A stretch of 64,000 nucleotides of DNA from Gnetum montanum (lineage: Eukaryota > Plantae > Gnetophyta). The stretch is from positions 260,061-324,060 of the forward strand of contig MNCI01002981.1 in assembly GCA_015680685.1 (NCBI GenBank), written 5' to 3'. The position numbers were made by a program, and so were the translations under genes. This document shows, piece by piece, positions 29,890-53,800 of the stretch. The first letter of the stretch is position 1; the number at the start of each line of letters is the position of its first letter. Below the pieces are notes generated by a model. It was not told where the DNA came from. It saw nothing but the letters and a program-made list of their open reading frames with translations, and did not search any database.

Positions 29890-32800
29890 TTATATACAAT
29901 CTTCAATGTCTGGAATGCTATCGCTTGTTGTGTTACACTTATTTTTGGCAGGTGCTTTTGTTGCCAAAACATCTACCACAAGTTGACCACAAGCACCACT
30001 TATGTCTTGCCCCATTTCCTGGCGGATTGTTGTTCTGATGTGATACACGGTCCTCAGCAGTTTTTGGAATGCCTTGACATTTTCCAGTGTGCTTGTTTTA
30101 TATTTGCTGACAGTTCCAATAGGATTGAAAGGTATCAAATTTACAACCTACAATGAACAAATTCAACACTAATCACAATTAAATGCAGAATTGGAATTAA
30201 AAAAAAAATCTAAATAGCAATGTTAAGACAGACAGACAAAAAAAAGTTATTTCTGAGGAGTTCAGGTGTTCGATGTTGTGTCCAAAACAACGGTATGGAA
30301 GTTTTTATTCACATGCAATGTCATGAAATATCAAATATTCCTGTTCAGCACAATCTGTTTCACTATATTAAAATGTATGCCTTACACAACACATACCACA
30401 TCATAACCGCTGAGCAACTCTCCCAAGAGATGCGCATGTGCTTCTTGATCATTTACTCCATCCAACATTATGTATTCAATCAGTATTTTACGTTTGCTAC
30501 ATAGAAACATAAATAAAATTATTGGCCATGGTTTTCAGACATTCTTGAGATATCAGATTACAATATCAAGGAAATATGAACAATAAATTTAAATAAGCAG
30601 GCATTCCTATTTAAATGTGATTCCTTCAAAGTCTCAAATTTCAGGATTCAAAAAAGAAATTGAAGTATACAACTTCTTAATAACTGAAATGATTGAGCTG
30701 ATGCCATCAGCCGACAAACATACAAACAAAAGCTCCAGCCCATTATAGCATTCTAAAATTCTAAAATTCGATATTCAATTATTGTGATTTCACATATGGG
30801 TGGAATTTGTAAACTCCAACCTTAATGTAAGAGCGACATACCAGTGTTCTTGATAACTACGCAATGACTCCATAAGCTTTGTTAAAGGAAATGCACGTGC
30901 AGCTGGCATTATTTGACAACGAATATCTTGTAAAGGAGCATGAAGTGAAACTGCAAGATTAATATTTGGTAAATCATGCTTTAAATTATTAATTCCATGA
31001 ATGATTCCCACCTGTCAAAATTTCAAAATTAGTTGCCAAGTTAATCGGCTAAGATTTTTTGTATAACAAAAAAAGTTGCAAGAGTATTATGGTAAGCAGT
31101 ATAAAATATAAAATGGAAAACCGTCAAAACTGAAATGCAACATGAAAGTCGATTTGGGCTTTGAAATAACAAGACATCTTATCATCAATTTTCTCTTCAT
31201 TAAAAACCTAGAACAAAAGAATACAGATTACCAATCAATTTTACGAACAAAACTTGAAAGATCGCAAACCGTAAAAACTCAAACAAATCATAAAGAGTAC
31301 AAAAGATCAGGGACATTGTTTGACAAACAGGGGTCCTGTTATGTTTTAATTGGGAACAAAACACTTTGAAACGCTGATCAGTGAGGCATAGCTTCTTGGT
31401 AACGTATGTGACATCAACCCTACTAGTTTCAGGTGAAATATTTAGAAATTTAGCTATGCGTTAGGATAATAATTTGATCCACATGAAGGTGGGTAGCAGA
31501 TGCCACACGTAATCAAGATATCCTAGTTGCAACCAAAACATGCCCGTACCCAAAAATCGGTATGAAATTGGAAAGCAGCTACTAAATAGAAACCTATACA
31601 CAATAGCAATGATTAGCATCAAAGATCAAGTGAAATGGCAAAAGGCCAAGGGACTCCCAGAATGAGAGCTATTGGGTTGAAAGTAGCCCAAGAGACTTGA
31701 ACAATAGGTGGGCTGTAATAAACAGCAATGAGGCACACTAGCAGATAATCATGTGCTGTGAATTCTATTAAGGATGACAACTTGAAGAGAGTTATTTGGA
31801 AGACCCATACTAAAGCATTCACTAGAATTTGTATAATCCGGTTTTTGTATTAGAATTAATGATTCTATAACATTATCCACTAATTATATGAAATACCATT
31901 CCCTCACTAAGTCGATGGTTAACTGAAATTCCTGCTTTCGTAGTTAACAAAACTTAAAACACTTGAACATGATAAAACATATTTGAATCATAAGTTCACA
32001 AGGTATAGTAGTTCATATATAATTAGTGGATAATGTAATGTTATAAAATCATAAATTCTAACACAAAAACCCAATTATTCAAATTCTATTCTATGCTTTA
32101 GTATGGTTAATTAAAACTCCTGCTTTTGTAATTAACAAAACTTTAACAATTAAACAGGATAAAACATTTATGAATCATAAGTTCAAGAATGTTTAGCAGG
32201 TCTAGCCCAATGCCCCATAAGATTGAAAATCACACAGCCTATGAAGAGAAGAAAATGTAAACGCTACAACAGTCTTTGGGCCGTGTAAACTTCCTACTGT
32301 GCCAAAGTTATTATCATATAATGGTCTTCTAAGTTGTCTTCTGCATGATAAAATTCAGAATAATGTGTTGTTATCAACAACAAAATCATGTTGGTTTTTT
32401 GAAATGGGCAGAGTGGGGAAGGGAGCAGGAGTGGGAGTGGGGGAGCGGGTGCTGGTGCATTTGCAGAGGGGACCGCGCATGCTGGAGCTGGAGCGGGAGA
32501 TGTACAGAACAGTCCAGAGGGCACCGTCAGCTCTGAGGAAAGTGGGCCTATGCAGGAGGGTGGTCAACAAGGATCAGTTTGGGTTCTGCAGGAGGACCCA
32601 AGGACGTTGCGGAACGGCCCAGGGATAGGCGGGTCTCTTGGAGGGGGGTGGAAGCCAAGAGTGGGAGGAATTGATGCCTGTTACCAGCAGGAGGGTCACA
32701 TATGACTACAGATGAAAGGCTGTTCTGAGGAAGGAAATCAAAGGATGGAACATAGCCTCATTGGGAAATTCATCTCCAAGGGTGTCAGGCCCAGCCTCAA

Positions 32801-35800
32801 CCTCACTGCAAAGTGGGAACATACCATGTGGAAAATGGAGGAGGTTGGGGTTCAATGCCTATCAGGGGAACTGCTCCTATTTATTTTATGGACTATGGAG
32901 GAACAGGACCGGGTTCTGGCTGGGAGGCCCTAGTTCTATGGGGCATGTGGCCTTGCTTTGACCCCTTGGAGACCCGGGGTGCACAGAGAAGAAGATCTAT
33001 TTGCTTGGGCACTAGTGTGGATTCGAACCTCCGGGATTTCATGGAAAATGTGGACGCCGGCGTTCCTCACAGCTTTTGCAGATTTCTTTGGAGATTTCAT
33101 TACCTTAGACAGATCCACTAACTCCATGATGAGGATGGGTTTTGGTTTTGTGCATTTTTGTCTCTGGCGCCCCCTGTCGTCAAAAGACCTTGTCAAGGAG
33201 GTCTCATTGGAATTTCCTATTGGTGCAAACACCATCAAAATCGAATATGAAAATCTGGAGGAACCCAATCCCACGTTGCAGTTTGGGAGGGGTTGTGCGG
33301 TCTGTGAAAAGACTAGAAACTTGGCCATTGAATGCAAGGTGAAGCAAGGTTTGGGAGATGCAGCAAAGCCCAAGGGCATGCAAGGAAAAGGTTCGGGCTG
33401 GTTCCAAATCCAGAAGGGACAAGCGATGTTGGTTGCCACAAAAAAGGAGATGCCTCCACAGATGATGGAGGAGACACAACTGGATGGGCCTGAGCCGACC
33501 AAAGCATTAGAGATGAAAGGCAAGGTTGTGAACAGGGGAGCAGGAAGGGCTGTGGAGGAGGAAGTTACATAGCGGACCCCCTGCACACCAGCGGGGAACA
33601 AGAGTGGAGGGGACCTGTCAATGCCAGAGCTCCCACTGTTGGGGGATTGGGTGTTGGTTGTTCGCAAATCTTCCAGACCATCAATGTCGGAGGTCCACGG
33701 GGAGGTCATTCAAACCCCTAGATTGGCCAACCTCACAAACCCATTGCAAGAAGCAAGCAAACACAACTGGAAATAGATTTGGGAATTCAATGAACCCTAA
33801 GGGAGGCTTTTGGGAATTGATCATTGAGTTTCCCATGAAGATTCTTTCTTAGAATTGCAAGGACTGGGGTACACCCTACAAAAGAACTACCCTAAAAGAC
33901 ATTGGTGGGCGTGAGGGTTGTGACGTAGTCTATTTGCAAGAGATGAAGCTACAACAGTTGGAGTTTGGTTGGTTGCAATGGCAAGGTTGGAATGCATAGT
34001 TATTTCCTTGTAGTGGTAGAGTGGGTGGTAGAGTGGGGGGCCTTGCGATACTAGCCCAAACAACGTTGGTGCTAGTGGACGAGTCCCGCTAGAGCCAAAT
34101 GGTACATTTGGCTCAAGAGGACCTTTGGCTCACAAACATATATGGGGCACAAAATTGGGAAGTTCCGGTATAGGAATTCCAGAGGCTGGCATTGGTGGTG
34201 CTAGACAAAAAGCGTTGGATTTTGATTGGAGATTTTAACCTGCATCTTTACACATGGAAAAAGATGGGAGGAAATAACAATATTCCCTCAAGCAGCCAAG
34301 AGTTGTTGGAGTTCCTCCAACAACATAGCCTGGTAGATATGGAAATAGAAGGCTGCAGTTTCTCTTGGAGCAACCAATGCAAAGGGATTGAGTGCATCTA
34401 GTTGAAGATTGACTGGGTGTGGGTGAGTACTAGTTTAGCACTTTAGTATAACATTCAGGTAATGAGCAAGGAGCGACAGGCATCTGACCATTGCTCCTTA
34501 TTATGCAACCTGCATGTGGTGCGTGGTTTGGGCCCTTGGCCTGTTAGATTTGAGCGTACATAGCTTTCTAAACCATGGCTCAGGCTGCTTGTGCACAATA
34601 TCTGGCAAGGGTACTCAGAAGAGGTGGACCCAAGGAACTTCATCAAGCACGACCTACGCACTCTCAAGGGCCAAATCAAGAATAACGCCACTGTGAATAA
34701 ATATGGTTTTTGGACCTTCTTCTCCTAGTTACTGCACCAGCTCTCTGCTATGCAGGCAAGGCAGGAACAAGGTGAAGATCTACATGAAGAGGAACAAACA
34801 CTACTGCGAGAATTGTAGGACCTCTCGCTGGAGGAGGTCTACTGGTGGCAACGTGCCAAAATCACATGACTTAGGGAGGGGGATAAAAATACCAAATTTT
34901 TCTTTGCGTTAGCAAAGGAGCGAGGACAGGAGAAGCACAAAATCAAGCTTGTTCAAGATGGGGTTGTCCTGGCAAATGAGGAGCAAGTCGCTAATACTGT
35001 GTGTCATTACTGGGGGAAGATCTGGTGAAGGAAAAATACTGGTCCAATTTTGGCGCACATACTGCAAGTGCTAGGATTGGTGGACAACCTGGCCTTGCTT
35101 CGCCTATTCACAGTGTAGGAGCTGGTCATCACAATGAGGACGATGAAGACTAACAAGGCACCTAGCCCTCACAGGTGGCCAATAGAGTTCTTCAAGGCAC
35201 ATATGGACCTCATGGGTGCAAATATCTTGTCAATCACATGCTCCATTGGTGGGAGGTAAGAAGCAAATTAAACTACTCACGCATTATTTTAATCCCCAAG
35301 ATTCCGGTGCCATCATCTCCCATGCACTTTCAGTCGATTGGGGTCTGCAACACTCTCCTCAAACTGTTTACAAAGATGTTGGTACAACGCTTGGTGCCGC
35401 TCATGCCTCAACTTGTCAGGCAGAATTAAGCAAGCTTTGTGAAGGGTCTTCCTACAGGACCAGGTACTTTTGATGCAAGAAACAATGTTGCGGAAGGGCT
35501 TTGCGCTAGATTTCGTGTGCCTATGCATGCAAATTCAGTTGTCGGGACAGTACTCGTTCAACATTGGGGGCAGGTTTTGGGGTTTTGCCTCGCCTAGGCA
35601 TGGCTTGCATCAAGGAGATCCCCTATCCCCCTTGCTCTTTATTTTGATCATGGATTTGCTGCAAGGGTACTGCAAGATAGAGGGGCTCTAAGGTGTGTTG
35701 GTAGTTGGGGTGCACTGCATCACAAAGCACTACGCCAATGACATGATTATCTTTGCATGTGCGGCCATCCTGTAGGCGATGACCCTTCAATGAGCACTGG

Positions 35801-38800
35801 AGCGGATGGAGGTAGAACTAGGACTTGTGGTCAAGCAAAGTCTGCACTGCACCTACTCAACATGGACACATAGGTGAGTTCCCAAATCTGTTAGGTCCTA
35901 GGTATCTTGCCTGGGACAACACAGGACTCCTACCTTGGGATGCCAATCTTTGACTGGCACAGGAGGTCAACATGGAACACACTGCTTCACAAATTAGAAA
36001 CAAAGATGAAGCATTGGACAAACCGCTTTCTATCAAGAAAGGGCAAGCTAATCCTTGTGTCATCAATTTTAATGGTGATGGCAAGAATTACGGCTTCCAT
36101 GGCACATTCGCCTGAGGGGGTGACCCAAAAAATCGATCAGATTATAAGGCGCTTTGTCTAGTCGAGAGGCAAAGGAGGAGGTAAATTGCACTTGGTCTAC
36201 TAGGAAAATATCGCAAAGCCAAAAAATGCAAGAGGAATTGGTATCTTGAATTTTAAGACTGAGATTCTGCTGGGAATGCAAAGGCTTGTCAATAAATTGC
36301 TAGTGCCGAAGGGACAGCCTACCCAATGGGTTAGCATCATCCAAGGGAAATATTAGTTTTGGGAGGTTGGCTCAAGAGGATCGTAGTTCTGGAGAGCATT
36401 GTGCCAGCATGCTACTCAGATGAGGGTCTTTGTTCTGTTGGGCATGACTCCAAAGGAGGTTTATCTAACATTACTTTCTACCGACCCCTAGGTGGAATAT
36501 TATATGGCAAGGTCAATTTCTTGAGAAAGTGAAGGTTTTCCTATGGTTGGTGGCTAATAGGGCGCTACCAGTGAGATGGCTCCTGCAAGAGAAAGGCTTG
36601 GAAATCGATCCTCAGTGCCCCCTCTACATGCAGAGTACAGAAACGACTCATCATTTTATTTCTCAATGTCCCTACATGCTTGACACCTGGTAGGCCGTGG
36701 GGCTACAATTGCCTGCGAGATTGGATGGGGATAAAAAGGAAACAACAATGCTGTGGATGACTTGGAAGCACCGAAATCACTTGATTTTCAAGGGGCAATG
36801 GCTGCCACCATCATCAGTTGTTGCCACTCAAGTTGAAGCTTTGGGAAGAGGCAACACACAATATGGGGCACCTATGTTATCAGTGGCCAACGGTGGCAGA
36901 ATTTAGAGCTGACAAAGAGTTGTCAACACTAATATGACAAACCAAATGGGAGGACTTGTTGTCCCAATTGACAAAGTGCCAGATCTAGTGGATGATACCT
37001 TTTTCGAGCAATGGGTTGGGGAGGAAACAACATTTCAGGGAAGGAAGATTGTGTTGATGGAGGGGGTTGTGGCTGAGGCACTGGGTGTCCCGACGGATGG
37101 GGTGGTGCCCAACCAGTGCTCCATAGCTACAAGTATGTGCGTTAGTTCTTCCATGGCCCGACACCAAAAACAACCAACGGCCATGTCCCCTGGACGACAC
37201 TACCGCTGCTATGGCAGAAGGCGGTGACCCTAGTTGACACATTTCTTGTGCAGTCTAGCATTGTGAAGGCGGTGACCCTAGTTGACACGTTTCTTGTGCA
37301 GTCTGGCACTGTGTCAAAGTTGCTGGGAGTACACTTCGCCTTCATGCACTACCTCAGAGGGAGTTTGAGGGTCAACATTCCGCATTTTCTCTTGTCGTCC
37401 CTGTGAAGACGATAGCTTGGACGACATACAAGGCTTATCATGGCTCTATGGTAGCATGCAACGGAGGCCCCGACAATGGTCCATATGGCGATTTTCCTTG
37501 TCTACCATCGGTGATGGCTCCGAGACGACCATCGCACTGACGTGTCTAGATCTGGGTTGCCTACGGCAAAAGGAGGGGGGGGGGGGGGGGGGGGGGGGNA
37601 AGGGAGGACTGAACAAGTGTGGATGAGGATAGAGGAGGTCAAACAAGTTTGCAAGGCAACGGGACACTAGGCCCATAAGGAGGAGACAGGTTTTTTAGGA
37701 GGGTTGGGATGTGTGTGAAGAGGCCCTCCAGAGGGCGATCAATTTGGCAACATAGCACAAGGAAGAATGGCAAAAGTTCTCCCGGTGGAACCAGCAAAGA
37801 CAAGTGTTGATCATGTAGCTGTTGAGGTAGGACAACCCATGGCTGGGGGAGAAAATAGGCACATAGTTAGAATCAGAGGGTATGCAGCAAGAGGCGGTAG
37901 GAAGGTAGGATCGGGGGGTGGGGGGAGGGAGGAATGATGGGGGATCAAGTCGGGTGCCCTAATCATGTTTGGCTAGGGCTACAGCCTTTCGGGATGGGTC
38001 GCTACCTAGTGGAGTTTTTGTGGGTTGGGCCATTGGCTCGTTTCTTGTGCCACATGTGTTCTCTCTAGGTGTGCGGTGTACGATCTGTATGGCCCATTTG
38101 GAGGCCCTCTTGGTCTTTGGGTTTTCCGATTTTGGGGTTAGGTTTGGTTCCTTTGCATGGTGCCACTTGCAATGGTGGATCCTGCCATGTCAACACGTGG
38201 GATAGTGGTTGCCGGGTGCCACCTCTTCCCAATTTGTAAATATTTCATTACACTTTTAATAACAACCTAAACATTTCTCATAAAAAAAAAACAACAAAAT
38301 CATGTTGATATTTTATGTTGAAAATAATATATATAGCATACAACCTCAATAAAAAATAAACAACGGCCAGATAAGAATAGTATCCACCTACTGTTGATAT
38401 CGTGACATGCCTTGGTGACAACTGAAAGCAGGGCCCTGTAATTGTTCGCACTGCTTGAACAACTGACTTGTAATTGTTCAGAGGTTCTCCCATTCCCTGC
38501 AGAATATAAGATGAGCTAAAAGAATGTTAAAGTTGTTTGATCACCTTCACCTATTTATGAATTATAGAGAAAATGCTGATTAAGAAAAGAGTGGATAATG
38601 CTTATTAACAGTCAAAATGTTGCCTATTTTTTTGAAAAAGTTGGGAAAATGTCCATCATGCAAAAAAGACCTTTTCCTGATGTTCTTAAAGGCAAATCTG
38701 AAAAGGTCACTAAAATCTGAATCACAGTCCTACCGTATTCAAAGGAAACCCACTCTTAAAGGCTACAATTTGGAGGACAAAATCTATAGTAATAGGTTTT

Positions 38801-41800
38801 GTTGATGCAAATTTATTGCTGATTTCAATATTAGGCAATATACAATACGATATACATTTACCTTTCACGGAGCTAGTGTAGTTGGTTGTCAAGGTTCGAA
38901 TCATTGATATCTTCATGAAAGACAGGTTGAATATGTAGCACTGGCAGAAGCTTGTAAAAACATGTTGTGGCTTTGCAGCTTTCTAAGGTCTGAGTATGAA
39001 ACAAAAGGATTATCATGTATTTTCTGATAACCAAAGTGCTATCTTTTTTTAGCAGACCTCATTTTGTTGGGATAAGGCTGGGGTGATGATGACAATGAAA
39101 GTGCTATTTTTTGGCTAAAAATCTAACTTATCATGAATATCACAATAAATACAGAAGATTGAGCTTTTATAAAGCCCTTTTATAAAAGGGTTTTATTTTT
39201 CACTTTTTAAAAATGCAATGTTCCTTCTAATATTTTAGAGTTACTTTTGTAATATAAACAATTGTACCATTGACACAATGTTATAGAGGGAAACTAAAAC
39301 TTTTTGGAGGTATGTAGAAAGGTAATCTAGAAGATTCCAAAGTAAGGCATATGGTAATTAGGTTTGAATGCTAGTGAGACACCTGTTGGGCTTGGGTTCT
39401 TCTTGTACTTTCATATTGTTTGTATCCTGGTTGCATTAGTACAATATCTCTGCATTGCTTTCTTGTGATTTTCCCACAGTAATTCCTTATTTCTCATTTT
39501 ATTTTCTTTACATTTTCCATTATTTCAGTTTCCACCAATATTCTACAACAATATAAACAATCACAAAAAACAGCTGCAACATCCTTTTTCGTTTGTAACT
39601 GTCAACCATATCAAATTGTTAAACAAAGTTTCTATGCGGATGTACCATGAAAACCACATTACGAATAGGGGCCACTCGAACTGCATGAACAAGCTGCTCC
39701 ACTATCTCTCCAGCTGAAAGATTGCTCTTAAAACCCATAGTTCCAGTAGCACAGAAATTGCAACCCATTTTGCAGCCAACCTAATAATTTTCATTCAGTT
39801 AATCATAACCTTCTGGTCATAGAAATGTTTGCATTAAATTTAAGTACCACTTTGTATTCATTACTCGATAGAATCTTTGGAATTTGACACAAATGTTACC
39901 TGTGATGATATACAGAGTGTCGCCCTTAAACCCCCAGGCCTTGGCTTACCAGCATAACTTCCTAATCTTGTATCATACACCATAATCACAGCTTCAACAA
40001 AAAGACCTTTCTGGTAGTAACAAACATGTTAGCAAACAATGTTGCAATTATATATATGAAATGTAATGCAAACAAGCATTAATGTGCAACCAAAAACCCA
40101 TTAATTAAAAATAAAAAAATTAATGTTTACATTCAGAATAATATAGGATATTTCAAGAAATTAAATTAAGATGAATTTGCACGTCATCTTGTATAGGCTT
40201 GAACTTTGGATTTTGGATTTGAACTAAAGCAAGGTAGTTTTTAGGTTTTGTGATATGCTTTCATGGTTTTGTGGTAAGGGTTGTGTTTCCTCACCAGCAG
40301 GCCATGGGTTCAGATCGATCTGTGCCACATGGAAAAACGCTTTCAATGTATCTTCTGGTAGGTGTCAGGCACAGCATTCAAGTATAAAAATATCCATAAA
40401 TTCTAAGAAAAAGGTGCGAACAAATTAGTGAGATAAAGAGAGAGAGGATTACATCTACCACAAAAATTAAATCACAAGTTTCTAAAAGCATGGAAACTAT
40501 TGCCAGAGAGCTTACCAATTTCATGTATCTAACTCAAAGTAAAACTTTTACACATTAGAATATGCACTCATTATGTACATGAACTGAATAACTTATTTAT
40601 AACAGAGAAAGTAGTTTATTGACAATTATGTACTGACAATTACAAAATAATTCATTACAATTTGGATAGGAAAAACTAGTTGTTATATCCTTACAAAGTT
40701 AAAGCGTTATCATTTCACTATATTTGAGAATGTCAGGAACACTGAAACAATAAATAAGCTACATGTCAATGACTTTAACAAGGAATAAAGCTAAATAGAT
40801 AGATACAAATAGATAGCTAAATTTTCTGGTAAAGAACAAATATATCAATTGTGTAATTAAAATAGCATTGAATATAAAATCCACATTATTGTACATTTTC
40901 CTAAATGTAAGTACATAAGACACAAGTAGTCCAAACTCTTAGCAGTTTTCTTGATGATATTTTCAAAACTTATAGCAAGTATGTTTCCACTATTCAATTA
41001 TAGAATCTATCTTTATTTTTCATGAAAATATAATATCTGTCCAATAGATCCCATGGGTCTTCGGATGTACTAAAGCTTCCTTTCATTTCATAATTCAAAT
41101 ATCAACATCATCACCATCCTAACTTTGTCCCAACAAAAAGAGGTCAGCCATATGAGTTCTTTCTCACCAGTCACCTCTATGAAGAGCTATGCTTATTTGT
41201 GAAAAAAGAGATGAAATGAAATAGTTCTCTTTATTAAAGTTTATGAAAGATTGCATACAAGGATTTATAGACCAGCCTTATTCCGTATTTCAGGAAACAA
41301 ACTAAAAAAGAAAACCAATCTTCTAGAAATCAGAAACGATAAAAATGGAAGCTATAAATCAGGGGAAAAAACTCCACAAAAACTGCAATTAATCCCAAAA
41401 AATCAGGAATTTACTTAGTCTTTCCAACACTCCCTCTCAAGCTGGAGAATAGATATCTATCATTCCCAGCTTGCAAACTAAAAACTCAAAACTTGGTTTT
41501 GATAATGCTTTGGTGAGGATATTGGCCTCTTGATCCTTGGTAGGAATGTAAGCTAGGCTGATTGCTCTCAAGTCAATCTCATGCTTGATAAAGCTTCTAT
41601 CTATTCTAACATGCTTCATTCGATCATGTTGAACTGGGTTGTGGACAATGCTTATTGCTGATTTAATGTCATTGTAGAGCTTCATAGGAGCTGAGAATGA
41701 AATTTTTAGATCCTTTAAAAGTCTCTCAATCCAAATAAGCTTGCACACTCCTTGGCAATCGCCCGGTACTCTGCTTTAGTGCTGCTTCTTGCTACAACTG

Positions 41801-47800: not shown

Positions 47801-50800
47801 AGTTTTTACGAACCTCTCAATATCTAGATGTGATTTGCCTTTTAACTTAATTTGAAAATCCATTGGTTGTCATCCTTAAAAGCTAAATTTTTTCTTCCCA
47901 ATTATCTCATCAATTTATGAGTGGTTTAGATAATAGTATGATGTCTCTTATACATTATCCCACATTTTATCAATCTGGGCTTAACATATGATTTATGACA
48001 TGCATCAGGATTTGTGCTACATTCATATAAGTTGTATAGCTATTACTAGAGGGCCTGCAGTTATGTATAGAAATATGTATTATAATTTTCATTTTGGAGT
48101 ACCAATGTGCAAATAGTATATTCTTTGAAATATTTCGGTCTCATTTATATGAAAAATTACAAGTGGGGAAAATGTGTCAAAGAAAGAACAATAGGAAGTT
48201 TCAAGGCTTTGTATGCTTTCAAAAACAAGTGTAATGATTTTGGACTTTAGGCTTGGAAAGTCAAAAAATAAATTTTCTAGACTATCATCTATCGTACTGT
48301 ATTATATGGATGTGTTGTTTGGGAACTTGGACCTAATGCTAAACTTTGGATCTATTTTAATATATGCCTTCACTTGGTGACTTTAATATACCAGGACCTA
48401 TTCTTAGTTGGAAGTGTAATCGTAACTCTGAATTTGATGATAATTGTGCTTCACAATAGTTTCTATAATTATGAGTATCATAAGTCATGAGCAACGAGAT
48501 ACCCCTACACTCAACCATACAAATACAAGCATGTATGCGTGATCTGGTCGAACTCTGTGGACAAACTAGTTATGGCACCTAGACAGTTATACATTGATCG
48601 CAGTTTGTTGTCTTCCCATCTAGACTAGTATTTGCTTGTCATGTATGGTTTAGTCTAGAGTGAGGTGTATGATGCGGTTTCTACCACTATGCTACTCCTA
48701 AGGACAACTAGAAATAATTGAATTAGGCTAGCCTAAGTGCGATAAGCATCAATCCCTAATCATTTGTACGCATCTTAAACTTTGTGTACTACTTCTGGGA
48801 TTACCAAATGTACATCACTCGAAACACTACTTGATACGCTACTGAGTTACCACGTAGTTACACTTAAATGTTTGTGATTAAGACATCCTCATTTTGCGTT
48901 AACATTAAGAATAGTAAATGACAATAAAAGGAATATTAACTAAGAAAACAACAATAAATAATAAATAATTAAAATAAATTACAAGTTAAGTAAATGCTGC
49001 AATGATGGAGTAATCTCAATCTTTATTGCCAATTGTGTGTGTGTCCAAGTACATCACACTTGAATAAAGGTTCCGTACAATTACAAGCATCACACTACGA
49101 GCATGCACTTGGGAAAAGAACTAAAAACTAATTGAAAACTGACAAAAGACTTGACCCCAAAAGACTCAAGACTCTCTTTCTCTCGTTGTGTGCCTGAGTG
49201 CTATATTTATAGGCTAACACAAGAATCACAATATCATGTATACGATATTGTGTCCAAGCTACGATATCATGTACCCAATATCGGGGCCTAGCAAACTGCA
49301 ATTCATCATACCCCCATGACTGAATAAAAACTTGTCCTTGAGTCAAACAAAATGAGGAACAAATTCATTTGATTACAACAATGGATAGGTATGGGTTTAT
49401 TGAATGACTATGGATTATTTCATGCCGTAGTGTGGAACTAGACAAAACAAAATCTGGACACCAACACAAAATATAAAATTTTTCGGAACTCATGTGGTTC
49501 TTGGTGGCGGTGGCTTCTCCATGGGCTTCTTTCCTTTATCCTGTGCTCCAAGCTTCTAAAATGGATACTTCTGAAGGAGCACCTGAAGTTTTTCCTCCTC
49601 TGTCCAAGGATTATGTGTCATCCATGCTAATGTTCCAATGTTTAATAGAGTCAACATTTCCCATGGGCATGACAATTGCCAGAACATCTAATTGGCTTTG
49701 ACATACCATGCCGCAAATAACTACCGTTCTTCTTCATAGGCTCTGGCTTTGCCTCTGAATTTTTGATAATCCGTAAGCCGTCAAGCCAATTCTGCTGCTA
49801 CATCTTTTTGGCCTTGGTAGCTAACTTTACCACCTCTAGTTCAAAGTTTGCTACCTTTAGTCTTTGCAATGTCTTCTTGTGTTCCACAAACTCTATCTCA
49901 TGTTTGGCATAGGTGGCAGCTACTTGCTTTTCTAGCTCAGTTCTTGGGTGCCCTACTGTTAACATGGCCAAGTTGGCGTACCGTAGATTTGCCAACTCCA
50001 TGTATTCTGTAAGATCCTGGATCTGCAACTCCCGACTTTTTAATTCTACTTGATTGACGAAGGCATAAGTATCTAGTATGGCTCGCCAATCAGTATGTTG
50101 AGCACTGAAAGAATTAATGTGGTCCTTAGCCATACAGATCTCTTTTTCGATGATCTCCTTATACATCTCCACCTGATCACCGAGGTGTTCCTTTAATTTT
50201 TCATGTCGCCTAGCCTCATTTTGCCACGCGCTTATTTCAATGGTTGTCTTCTGCCAAATGGCGCGTACCTCCTCCATTGAGAGGGTTCTGTTCTCTCTGG
50301 CTAAGTGACTTATATCTTGGTTGACTCTTATTAGTTGTTCTCACATTTGTTGGAAACTTTTCTTGAGAACATTCTTCTATTTTTCAACTGTCGTCAACCG
50401 AAGATTTTCGGCAACACGGAGCTTATTCACTTCTTATAAGGCATTGAGAGCTTTCACATGTGCATGTGTCTGAGCTTGTGCTTTCGAAACATCCCAATCA
50501 GCCTTCTCTTTTTCCATTGCCACCCTTTTATTCTCCATTAACAATTTATTTAACTGCTTTGTCCTGAATGATTCTAACTAATCGGTTGGAACAAGTTGGG
50601 ATGGATCCCGCTGTTCAGCTTATAGGGCAACGAACTTTTCTTGGAGTCTCCTCAACTCATCTTCTGCATGTTCAGCCCTAACTTCAACCATGATCAACTT
50701 CCCTTTAGTGGAAATGAGGTCTAACTGTGCCACTGTGACATCTTGGGGGATGTCAAACAAGGACATTGTTACTTGTCTTGTTTGTAGCAAGCGATCCAAA

Positions 50801-53800
50801 GCATCTTCATGTTCCGTAGAAGTCATTGAGATACTAATCAGAACTTGAGCATCACATGCTCCTGTGAAATCTGCTAATGGCACAACAAAGATGTTAAATG
50901 ATTCTTTGATGTGGTCCACGACCACCTTTGCTACTTCAGTTGCATCCTAGTGTTGCATGACCACCACAGTGGCACCTTCACCAGTTTCTAATTGTACTTG
51001 GAATGATGCAACATTTCCAAAGATTTGTTGTGACCAATGCAATTTCCCTCCTCTTGTTTGAATTGAGACCTCACCTCTTGCAGGATTGATTGATATGGTG
51101 GGTTGTACAGCATCATCGATCACCTTGAAAAGATTGGCCTCATCCCTACTTCCCCAACTGATCGTATCTATGATGACCCTGAGATGGCTCATTGATGATT
51201 GGTAATCTTACGGCAATGGTGGTGGTTGCTGGTCCTATTGACCTGTGGGCTATGTGCTAGGCCCTGGTTCATGTTGTTGGCTAAGCCTTGTGTCTGGAAG
51301 TTGGCTAGGCCTTGCTATTTGAGGTGCAATCGGCCCAACCATCTGTTCTTGTTCAGGCTCCAATGTCTCACTAACATCTTTTCTCGATGCTGGTGGCTTA
51401 AGTAATTTAGCATATGAAGCATTTTGAGCTTTTATGTGGACATCATTAGTGTACCCCAAAATTCCAGCACGTTGGCACAGCTTCCTAATTAGACACAGAA
51501 AGGACAATGTGAACTTTCCTATCTTCCGTTCTTCAAACCACCTTAATATCTCTGTTAAATATAGATGGGGCAAATTGGCATCAACCTTGCCCATCAAAAT
51601 TGCACTTCCTCTGGCCGCATAGGTAGAAATTTTGTTTAACCCCTTCATTGAAAAAATGTGATAGATGCCAATTTTAAAGTAAATTCTCTCTTCAAGAGTT
51701 AACTCTCCATGTCTTGTCTTTTTTGCCGTACGCCCTTTTTAACCACATCTTTCTTACATCTGCATCAAAGTGAGTGGACAAATGAGTAACTTTAGGCCTT
51801 GTATTTGGAAGATTCAGAACTTCCGCAATGGCCTTTGTGGATAAATCAACTGAAATTCCACCAATATCAACGATGGTGCCCTCTTCTTTATTGTGCCAAA
51901 ATTGATAGGTTTCACCCAAATATCAATCTCCATTTTCCAAAAGGATAGGCCATAGTGGAGATCCCTTAAATAAATCCTTAATTGGTTTAAGGGAAAATTT
52001 GGTAAAAGACCCAAAATTAAGTTCCACAATCACTGCAATAGATGTGGATCTTTCCTGAATGGCTTGAACACATTTTGGGGACAATGTGAGGTGTTGTCCT
52101 TATTCTGGTGCCCTGACCTCTCCACCTTCGGCTTGACCAAATTGTGTAGTAACAGGGGTTTCTTGATGGATGTTGAACGATTGTGCCTCCTGTTCTACAT
52201 GTTCCACATGAGGTCCTTGGCCTCTGCCTCTTCTCAAGCATTTGGCTACACCTTGAAAAGGTCCTCTCTATTGTCCTCATTTAGGGACCATCTATAATCA
52301 CACAAAGATCGATTGTTAATAAGGCTATTTAAAGAAATTCAATTATCCCATACCTTACTCATTACCTTTAATAAAGGTTCAATTCTTTGTTTATTGTGAT
52401 TTCAAAGTTAGTTTCAAGGAAGTTCTCCTAAAAAGTTTTAATGTCAGGCCTGATCTGCTCAGGCAACTCCTATAATAATTTAAATGATTTGGGTGAAGGA
52501 AGAAAAGTAGTTTGGCATGAGTTTTTAATATTTCCTAGGAGTACTTACCCCTATGATATCCTTCAAGCGATAGCAAATTTCGAAAAAGTTATGTGCAAAT
52601 TCTATCATACCCCTCCCCCACGACTAAGTTAAACACTCCGAGTTTAATTAGGCTTGATCAGAAAAGAAATCAGAGTGTTAACAAGTGAAATATTGACGGT
52701 TGAATTTAGTCTCTCAAATCACTAAAAATCGTGGAAGAAAATTTGAATAACTCCCCCCGCATCAACTGTTGAAAATGACTTCTGTAGCATACAAGGGCCC
52801 CATATATATAGTTTTTATAGACGCGATAACGCGTACCTGATAGCGTGTACCCAATATCACGTCGGACCTCATACCAAGTACCCGATATCGCGTCCTATCC
52901 AAGATAGGATACTTAGTAAAATTAATGATTTTTCAAATTTTTACGACCAAAAATGAATGATTTGAGGTAGATTTGAAAAGTCTAGGGTAATGTCAAGTGG
53001 AAATTAAGGCACCAAAAGTGTAATGGAGTGGAGTTATACAATGAAGTTCTTTGAAAAGGGGGAAGAAAAAGTACATGTAGTGGTTCTAATGAATGTTCAA
53101 TTAAAATGATGACAAAGAAAGGAATAGATTCGGCAATGGAGTACTTGAAGGGTAGAAGATAATGTGGTGGTGTGCAACAAGTACAAATTACAAAAGTCAT
53201 GGAAGTGGATCCTCCCCAAAGCAAGTTCCAACCTATCATGCCCTTGTGTAACCACGCCTTAAAATGTCCGTAGGCACTAGAAAGGTTAAATGCAATCTGC
53301 ACCTATGCAACAAAACACACACATGTTAAATACCACCACTATGAGGTATGAATTCGATGCCACACAAGACACAAGTTAGAAACACCTGGACGGTGAGGTG
53401 AGACGAATTACAGAAAAGATCGCAGAGATCAGGATGTGAGGTAACTTACCCTAGGCACAATGAATCCTAAGTGTTGTGCATGATTAAAGTACCATTACCT
53501 TTTCGCTCCAAGATCAAAACCAAGTCCATACCTCTGATTAATGACATTGCATTGTTTCATCTCAATGATAGACAACCATACGAGCATCATGACAGCAAGG
53601 TGTATGATCACTTGACGTTTTGTGCAAGGAAGGAGTGATTCAAATTTGTTTGCGGCACATTTTTCTTGAGTTTTTTTTTTTTTTTTGGTTTCTCTTCTTT
53701 CTTTTTCTCTTTCGCTTTCTTTTTCTTTTCTTTTTTTTTCTTCCAGCCACTCTTGCACTTGGTCTTCCCCAAAGGTGATCCAGAGAAGCCACCAACCTTC

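Follow-up and report, generated by a model that had tools for sequence, protein, structure and literature searches.

Does a plant L1-type LINE carry a further protein-coding module behind ORF2? The original prediction, made from the letters of the window alone (the whole 64-kb stretch of DNA analysed here), read most of the GC-rich sequence between the end of ORF2 and the poly(A) as one ~350-aa protein. It took this to be the third ORF of a tricistronic LINE, with an origin in the accessory genes of LTR retrotransposons. We asked what the element is, whether the tail belongs to its family, how much of the tail was once coding, and whether that part has relatives elsewhere. The analysis points to an extra module of ~150 codons after zf-RVT, where many plant L1s have RNase H, and the LINE family probably carries it as a shared feature.

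The element and its family

The LINE is 5.9 kb long (32394-38289), closes with a short A-run (38282-38289) and is bracketed by a perfect 18-bp TSD, AACAACAAAATCATGTTG (Table 1). Pfam matches to separate pieces follow one another along it in the order DUF4283, Exo_endo_phos_2, RVT_1, zf-RVT. DUF4283 is the usual ORF1 domain in plant L1s, and its match here (9.3e-8) exceeds the curated Pfam cut-off; the RVT_1 score is only 0.043 because this copy is fragmented into pieces. A TSD and a 3' A-run without LTRs, a DUF4283-type ORF1 and an ORF2 with APE-type endonuclease, RT and zf-RVT in this order together place the element in the plant L1 clade. Given the TSD, the A-run and the ordered Pfam domains, we read it as a full-length L1-clade LINE, now dead. 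ORF1 and ORF2 are both split into many frame pieces. The block stands out at 45-55% GC from an AT-rich plant window of 33-38% GC, and its CpG observed/expected ratio is depleted to 0.32-0.48. An Rfam search of 32000-39000 gave no match.

To place this copy among its relatives, Logan contigs were aligned to 32380-38320 at a likeness of at least 80%. Three DNA runs (labels A, B and C) and a further run, presumed to be RNA (label D), supplied the contigs. The DNA runs contributed 758, 1002 and 979 aligned contigs, with identities mostly below 90% and with C>T and G>A as the prevailing differences. Judged by these contigs, the family is large, old and methylated. The insertion itself is common to the runs labelled A, B and C, contigs of each of which span the 5' junction. 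The interval 32394-38289 thus holds one full-length member of an abundant plant L1-clade LINE family, dead and decayed through methylation. Considered alone it is an ordinary dead insertion, and its interest resides in the family.

Table 1. Features of the LINE copy and its tail, in window coordinates
Feature	Position	Strand	Evidence
Left TSD (AACAACAAAATCATGTTG)	32376-32393		18/18 identity with 38290-38307
Complete L1-type LINE, strongly decayed, with numerous stops and frameshifts	32394-38289	+	TSD and A-run bounds
ORF1 remnant, DUF4283 type	32706-33569	+	Pfam DUF4283 E=9.3e-8 on 32934-33569
ORF2 remnant, many frame pieces	33853-36906	+	Pfam, searched piecewise
ORF2 endonuclease	34174-34398	+	Pfam Exo_endo_phos_2 1.7e-6, above cut-off
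ORF2 reverse transcriptase	35443-35688	+	Pfam RVT_1 0.043, weak
ORF2 zf-RVT	36469-36690	+	Pfam zf-RVT 2.5e-17, above cut-off
Variable linker, zf-RVT to tail domain; contains TAG 36904 and TGA 36910	36744-36965	+	Paralog contigs of 3 runs: 222 nt skipped, equal length, diverged
Tail domain block 1 (IDKVPDL...), in ORF2's frame	36967-37107	+	Paralog depth equal to ORF2 depth; ESM Atlas lead
Frameshift site	37108-37109	+	About half of paralog contigs have an extra T behind 37108
Tail domain block 2; one internal stop at 37143-37145; predicted all-helical, low confidence	37110-37403	+	AF2 pLDDT 64
Tandem duplication of 48 nt (16 codons, in frame); the 2 copies are 94% alike	37217-37312	+	Absent from paralogs
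Variable G-rich tail middle, stops in all frames	37404-38150	+	Paralog depth 4-5 times lower; no Pfam or PDB match
Poly-G run with one N at its end	37575-37599	+	Contigs of all runs break (37564-37598)
Conserved 3' end of LINE family with short A-run (38282-38289)	38151-38289	+	Paralog depth back at ORF2 level
Right TSD	38290-38307		18/18 identity with 32376-32393

The frame of ORF2 terminates at TAG 36904-36906, and 1373 nt then follow up to the A-run (~1.33 kb without a private duplication, 3' UTR included). These data bear out the predicted ~1.4 kb of GC-rich sequence: the tail measures 45-55% GC, with a positive GC skew as elsewhere in the LINE, and the flanks measure 33-36%. All peptide strings quoted in the prediction likewise occur in the translations. 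Contigs of ~82% identity bridge ORF2/zf-RVT to the tail (X1 records 5 and 6, X4 record 11, X6 record 18). One of them, X1 record 5, spans 36170-36743 and 36966-37189 and differs from our copy at 39 of 224 letters in the tail and at 110 of 574 in ORF2, a comparable likeness; X1 record 6 spans 36524-37026. Family copies thus continue into the tail and do not end straight after ORF2. Because contigs join ORF2 to the tail, the tail is a family trait and no one-off 3' transduction. It belongs to the LINE family and moved with the element, as had been proposed from its position inside the TSD.

Conservation along the tail is uneven. Summed paralog depth across 36957-37354 equals that of ORF2, falls four- to five-fold across 37355-38150, and recovers over the final 170 nt; several of the paralog contigs skip 37862-38158. 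Upstream, the linker 36744-36965 is too diverged for paralog alignment, yet its length is constant at 222 nt, or 74 codons. Paralog contigs contain joints that are 48 nt shorter on balance and lack the duplication at 37217-37312; on this comparison the duplication is private to the lineage of our copy. RNA folding of the 3' end (38151-38289) revealed nothing unusual (z 0.12).

Coding status of the tail and its relation to ORF2

Open reading frames in the tail were compared with 1000 dinucleotide-preserving shuffles. At 104 codons, the longest open stretch falls just short of the average of its shuffled counterparts, 106 codons, and the five longest summed give p=0.14. Stop counts per frame are even (16, 19 and 18), and several open pieces overlap in different frames, as expected for stop-poor, G-rich sequence. 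Open-frame length in the tail is therefore at chance level. Evidence for former coding comes instead from the paralogs, whose coverage and indels together support it only in 36913-37403, an interval that looks like decayed coding sequence. The predicted ~350-aa protein accordingly shrinks to these ~150 codons, the remainder being unsupported.

Within this interval, at the break between blocks 1 and 2, our copy has a 1-nt deletion when compared with about half of the paralogs: an additional T behind 37108, present in that half and in both X8 contigs, unites the two blocks. The resulting ancestral frame of ~150 codons, a count that leaves out the private 16-codon duplication, has suffered one frameshift and three stops, which is not above the damage in ORF2. 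Across the following ~0.75 kb (37404-38150), no frame is outstanding, paralog support is thin, and we found no coding support in this LINE copy.

Two explanations would remove the need for a coding module. The tail could be an ordinary long non-coding 3' UTR whose protein-like look comes from its GC-rich, stop-poor composition. Open frames that match the shuffles, stops spread evenly across frames and the lack of a database match of any kind all suit such a reading, and it is certainly suitable for 37404-38150. For the tail domain itself we consider it improbable: 36957-37354 has been kept in diverged paralogs as well as ORF2 has, and the next 0.8 kb has not; the shared indel at 37108 sits exactly where two open blocks join; the linker is held at 74 codons; and a Transposase_32-type ORF shows collinear similarity to the domain that is weak yet consistent, to which the ESM Atlas adds a lead. 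Alternatively, the tail could record a one-off event, whether flanking DNA carried along by 3' transduction or a foreign fragment that nested in the LINE once it had inserted. The scarcity of paralogs over 37404-38150, the poly-G/N break inside that stretch and the contigs that skip 37862-38158 would be in keeping with such an event. It is nevertheless excluded for 36907-37354 and 38151-38289, which are found joined to ORF2 in many contigs from four runs with four organism labels, and our search of the tail found neither a poly(A) nor a TSD inside it, and no shift in composition. As an account of the tail, a one-off event is very improbable. Searches of the 64-kb window with the tail, by blastn and tblastx, detected no second copy.

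With an extra family module as the preferred reading, the question becomes whether it was a separate protein. Block 1 shares the frame of ORF2 (36694 and 36967 are both 1 mod 3), and the only stops between them are TAG 36904 and TGA 36910, with an ATG in frame further on, at 36934. Because block 1 lies in ORF2's frame behind a linker of constant length, a C-terminal extension of ORF2 is at least as likely as an ORF3. Given the T carried by half of the family, the reconstructed ancestral frame of ~150 codons is continuous with ORF2. Judged by frame and linker, the tail domain in active ancestors would have been a C-terminal extension of ORF2p, a reading we moderately favor over a separate ORF3 that starts at ATG 36934.

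The prediction of a tricistronic LINE thus holds in so far as an extra coding module after ORF2 is supported. A separate ORF3, with its own start at ATG 36934 or 36946 and re-initiation after the ORF2 stop, could be read from the present copy, in which the stops at 36904 and 36910 precede an in-frame ATG. We regard it as rather unlikely, since two stops within 9 nt do not exceed what the general decay of this copy would bring, the block lies in ORF2's frame, and the intervening 222 nt retain their length even in diverged paralogs. WEDLLSQL, proposed as the start of the protein, is present as a string; its frame is joined to the next block only in the minority of contigs with an extra G behind 36966, and otherwise the next block is in the frame of ORF2. 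That G, which with the T behind 37108 is among the best-supported indels, would favor another upstream frame.

Homology searches and the Athila accessory ORF

The original prediction proposed comparison of the tail with Pfam and with the Athila-like accessory ORF (aORF) of the same window. None of 17 tail pieces from the three forward frames matched a Pfam family, in a search of low power in which most true ORF2 pieces of this copy also fail. A phmmer search of 1.84 billion representatives with the 104-aa piece 36913-37224, which holds just 47 in-frame residues of the decayed copy, returned one spurious repeat protein. Word-indexed protein searches, a method blind to longer or shorter kin, were blank for 37146-37403, for the Athila piece and for ORF1. 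Metagenome contigs scanned with the tail piece and zf-RVT gave no match, nor did scans of viral contigs or a PDB search with tail pieces, and the ESM Atlas gave no usable match to 37146-37403. When modeled by AlphaFold2 without an alignment, 37146-37403 (pLDDT 64) and the Athila piece (pLDDT 50) are both predicted to be helical, at low confidence.

Two known folds were looked for in the tail. An RNase H reading is rejected, as no piece matches the RVT_3 profile and the motif spacing is wrong. A J-domain is not recognizable in this copy: a loose resemblance (CPN at 37955-37963, AVYDLYG at 38073-38093) is within noise. Pfam DnaJ (PF00226) gave no match; hmmsearch --max with a profile of the J-domains of E. 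coli DnaJ, CbpA and DjlA found none in six frames at E up to 100; tblastn returned noise only; frameshift-aware alignment to the J-domains of E. coli dnaJ, cbpA and djlA gave z of 0.15, 2.3 and -0.56; and phmmer against the PDB listed no J protein among its matches.

The accessory ORF lies on the minus strand at 51253-51922. Its piece 51253-51738 matches Pfam PF20167, Transposase_32 (E=3.7e-5, profile positions 90-176 of 177), and its N-terminal piece has no PF20167 match. This assignment agrees with sunflower Athila 14, whose 3' aORF carries Transposase_32 (PMC11728184). Additional ORFs of Athila/Tat elements have been reviewed before (Vicient and Casacuberta 2020; Steinbauerova et al. 2011; both as cited in PMC11728184).

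The prediction had noted that the pattern GxxIxLxxxxVAExLxxP in the tail recurs in this ORF, and it does so as one of two collinear motifs common to both, G.x[IV]xLxxxx[VI]AExLxxP and xN[IL]PHxxL. Their spacing is ~96 residues in the LINE tail, with the duplication removed, and ~95 in the Athila aORF. A Smith-Waterman comparison of the two sequences gave p ~0.05. Semi-global alignment, in which the tail frames were fixed by paralog indels and not by similarity, gave z 3.8 (p 0.002), the best of 12, with the eleven controls between -0.8 and 2.4. When the halves were aligned separately, cognate halves gave p 0.01-0.15 and crossed halves scored lower. A frameshift-aware local alignment that chose its own frames gave z 2.0, which is not above the ORF1 and ORF2 control regions, and neither tblastx nor blastn of the tail against the window found a significant match to the Athila ORF. 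Taken together, these pairwise results are suggestive of the proposed kinship; in the unbiased test the score does not rise above controls.

Profile and embedding searches add a further lead. The PF20167 profile (curated score 45 bits) found no tail piece at E up to 10, the pieces being short and decayed. In the ESM Atlas, the first piece (residues 8-66) lies nearest to clusters of hypothetical proteins from streptophytes (0.92), and PF20167 is the sole named family among the 30 nearest, at 0.88, a lead by the tool's own rating. By these comparisons the tail domain may be a distant relative of the Athila/Tat Transposase_32 domain, a suggestive, unproven relationship to which we assign slightly less than an even chance. 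The fuller reading, in which a plant L1 lineage swapped the RNase H position of ORF2p for a domain homologous to Athila/Tat Transposase_32, is tentative and somewhat doubtful.

Known systems and a proposed history

Descriptions of plant L1s give, to our knowledge, an ORF1 and an ORF2, and RNase H is the one additional module that recurs among them. Smyshlyaev et al. (2013, as cited in PMC5203782) reported such LINEs, in which an archaea-like RNase H domain follows zf-RVT. These elements belong to the same class as our copy, with a DUF4283 ORF1, an endonuclease-RT-zf-RVT ORF2 and the extra domain at the end of ORF2; the present tail differs in that it has no RVT_3 signal and its domain is predicted to be helical, with no Pfam family. 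In the literature searched, including the survey PMC5203782, we found no description of another conserved domain at the RNase H position of plant L1s.

The 3' aORFs of Athila/Tat elements resemble the LINE tail in the two collinear motifs ~95 residues apart and in their helical prediction. They differ in being separate 3' ORFs behind pol, whereas the LINE tail is fused to or lies just behind ORF2 in a non-LTR element; the tail also has no Pfam match, and the likeness falls below significance in unbiased tests. More distant precedents exist for retroelements that gain accessory coding capacity. In bdelloid rotifers, extra ORFs are common to different retroelement classes (PMC5408684), and primate L1 has gained ORF0 (as cited in PMC5203782). 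Such cases share with the LINE tail the gain of an accessory coding sequence, and the presence of one module in several retroelement types, but they belong to other kingdoms, involve unrelated proteins and occupy other positions in the element.

Shared across the family of a very abundant LINE, an extra domain of this kind would add a new case of modular evolution among non-LTR elements. What this copy contributes is the tail as a family trait, its frame relation to ORF2 and the first controlled tests of kinship. If the relationship to Athila/Tat is true, it ties the unexplained "additional ORFs" of LTR elements to a LINE and offers two independent contexts in which to study function. One accessory module would then serve two mechanistically unrelated classes of retrotransposon in the same genome, which would indicate a common host target, e.g. 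silencing, nuclear entry or chaperone use.

We propose that the module was translated as the C-terminal part of ORF2p in active ancestors. As modeled, it would form a small helical domain that acts in cis within the ribonucleoprotein of the LINE; its most likely role would be non-enzymatic, as an adaptor that contacts a host factor. By analogy with the Athila aORF protein, for which nuclear localization is predicted (PMC11728184), a role in nuclear entry or in escape from silencing is possible. Beyond the domain, 37404-38150 of this copy would represent sequence that diverges fast or has been rearranged, and behind it come the conserved 3' end and the poly(A).

The LINE tail

Contigs from all four runs, three of DNA (X1, X4 and X6) and one guessed to be of RNA (X8), end at the poly-G run of the LINE tail, the sequence 3' of the ORF2 stop, and this run may therefore be an assembly artefact or a site concealing missing sequence. 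The N that closes it is the sole N of the 64-kb window. The two units of the tandem duplication in the tail differ at 3 of 48 positions; the duplication is absent from paralog contigs, which derive from diverged other copies of the family, and is present without gaps in organism label B, in its orthologous contig (X4 record 12). At position 38281 the window has T and every contig covering the position has A, so the A-run of the LINE family is two bases longer than that in this assembly.

A J-domain end at 37955-38095 was also considered, with CPN (37955-37963), three transitions from the HPD motif, in one frame and AVYDLYG (38073-38093) in a different one, and was rejected as a loose, non-significant likeness that stayed at noise level in every test run.

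Features of the LINE, its upstream flank and the Athila-like element
Feature	Coordinates	Strand	Location	Basis
Two direct copies, ~85 nt, 86-88% alike, 187 nt apart	31915-32185		AT-rich DNA immediately upstream of LINE	
In-frame tandem duplication, 48 nt (16 codons)	37217-37312		LINE tail	
Poly-G run, ~25 G, N at its end	37575-37599		LINE tail	
Accessory ORF, Transposase_32 (PF20167) domain	51253-51922	minus	Athila-like element	Pfam match

ORF2-end variant and upstream repeat

One LINE-family variant over the ORF2 end (36161-36956) reaches a depth of 234-536 in X8, a small run of organism label D, versus 10-50 elsewhere. This variant has indels peculiar to it, namely an 8-nt gap at 36741 and the insertions +A, +TC and +GG, and could represent a LINE fragment expressed or amplified in that organism. 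The direct copies upstream of the LINE are probably a short tandem or MITE-like remnant.

The Athila-like accessory ORF

The Transposase_32 match (E=3.7e-5) comes from the piece at 51253-51738, and one frameshift, within 51695-51738, splits the ORF. The pieces downstream, at 49801-50946, match no family and have a coiled-coil look.
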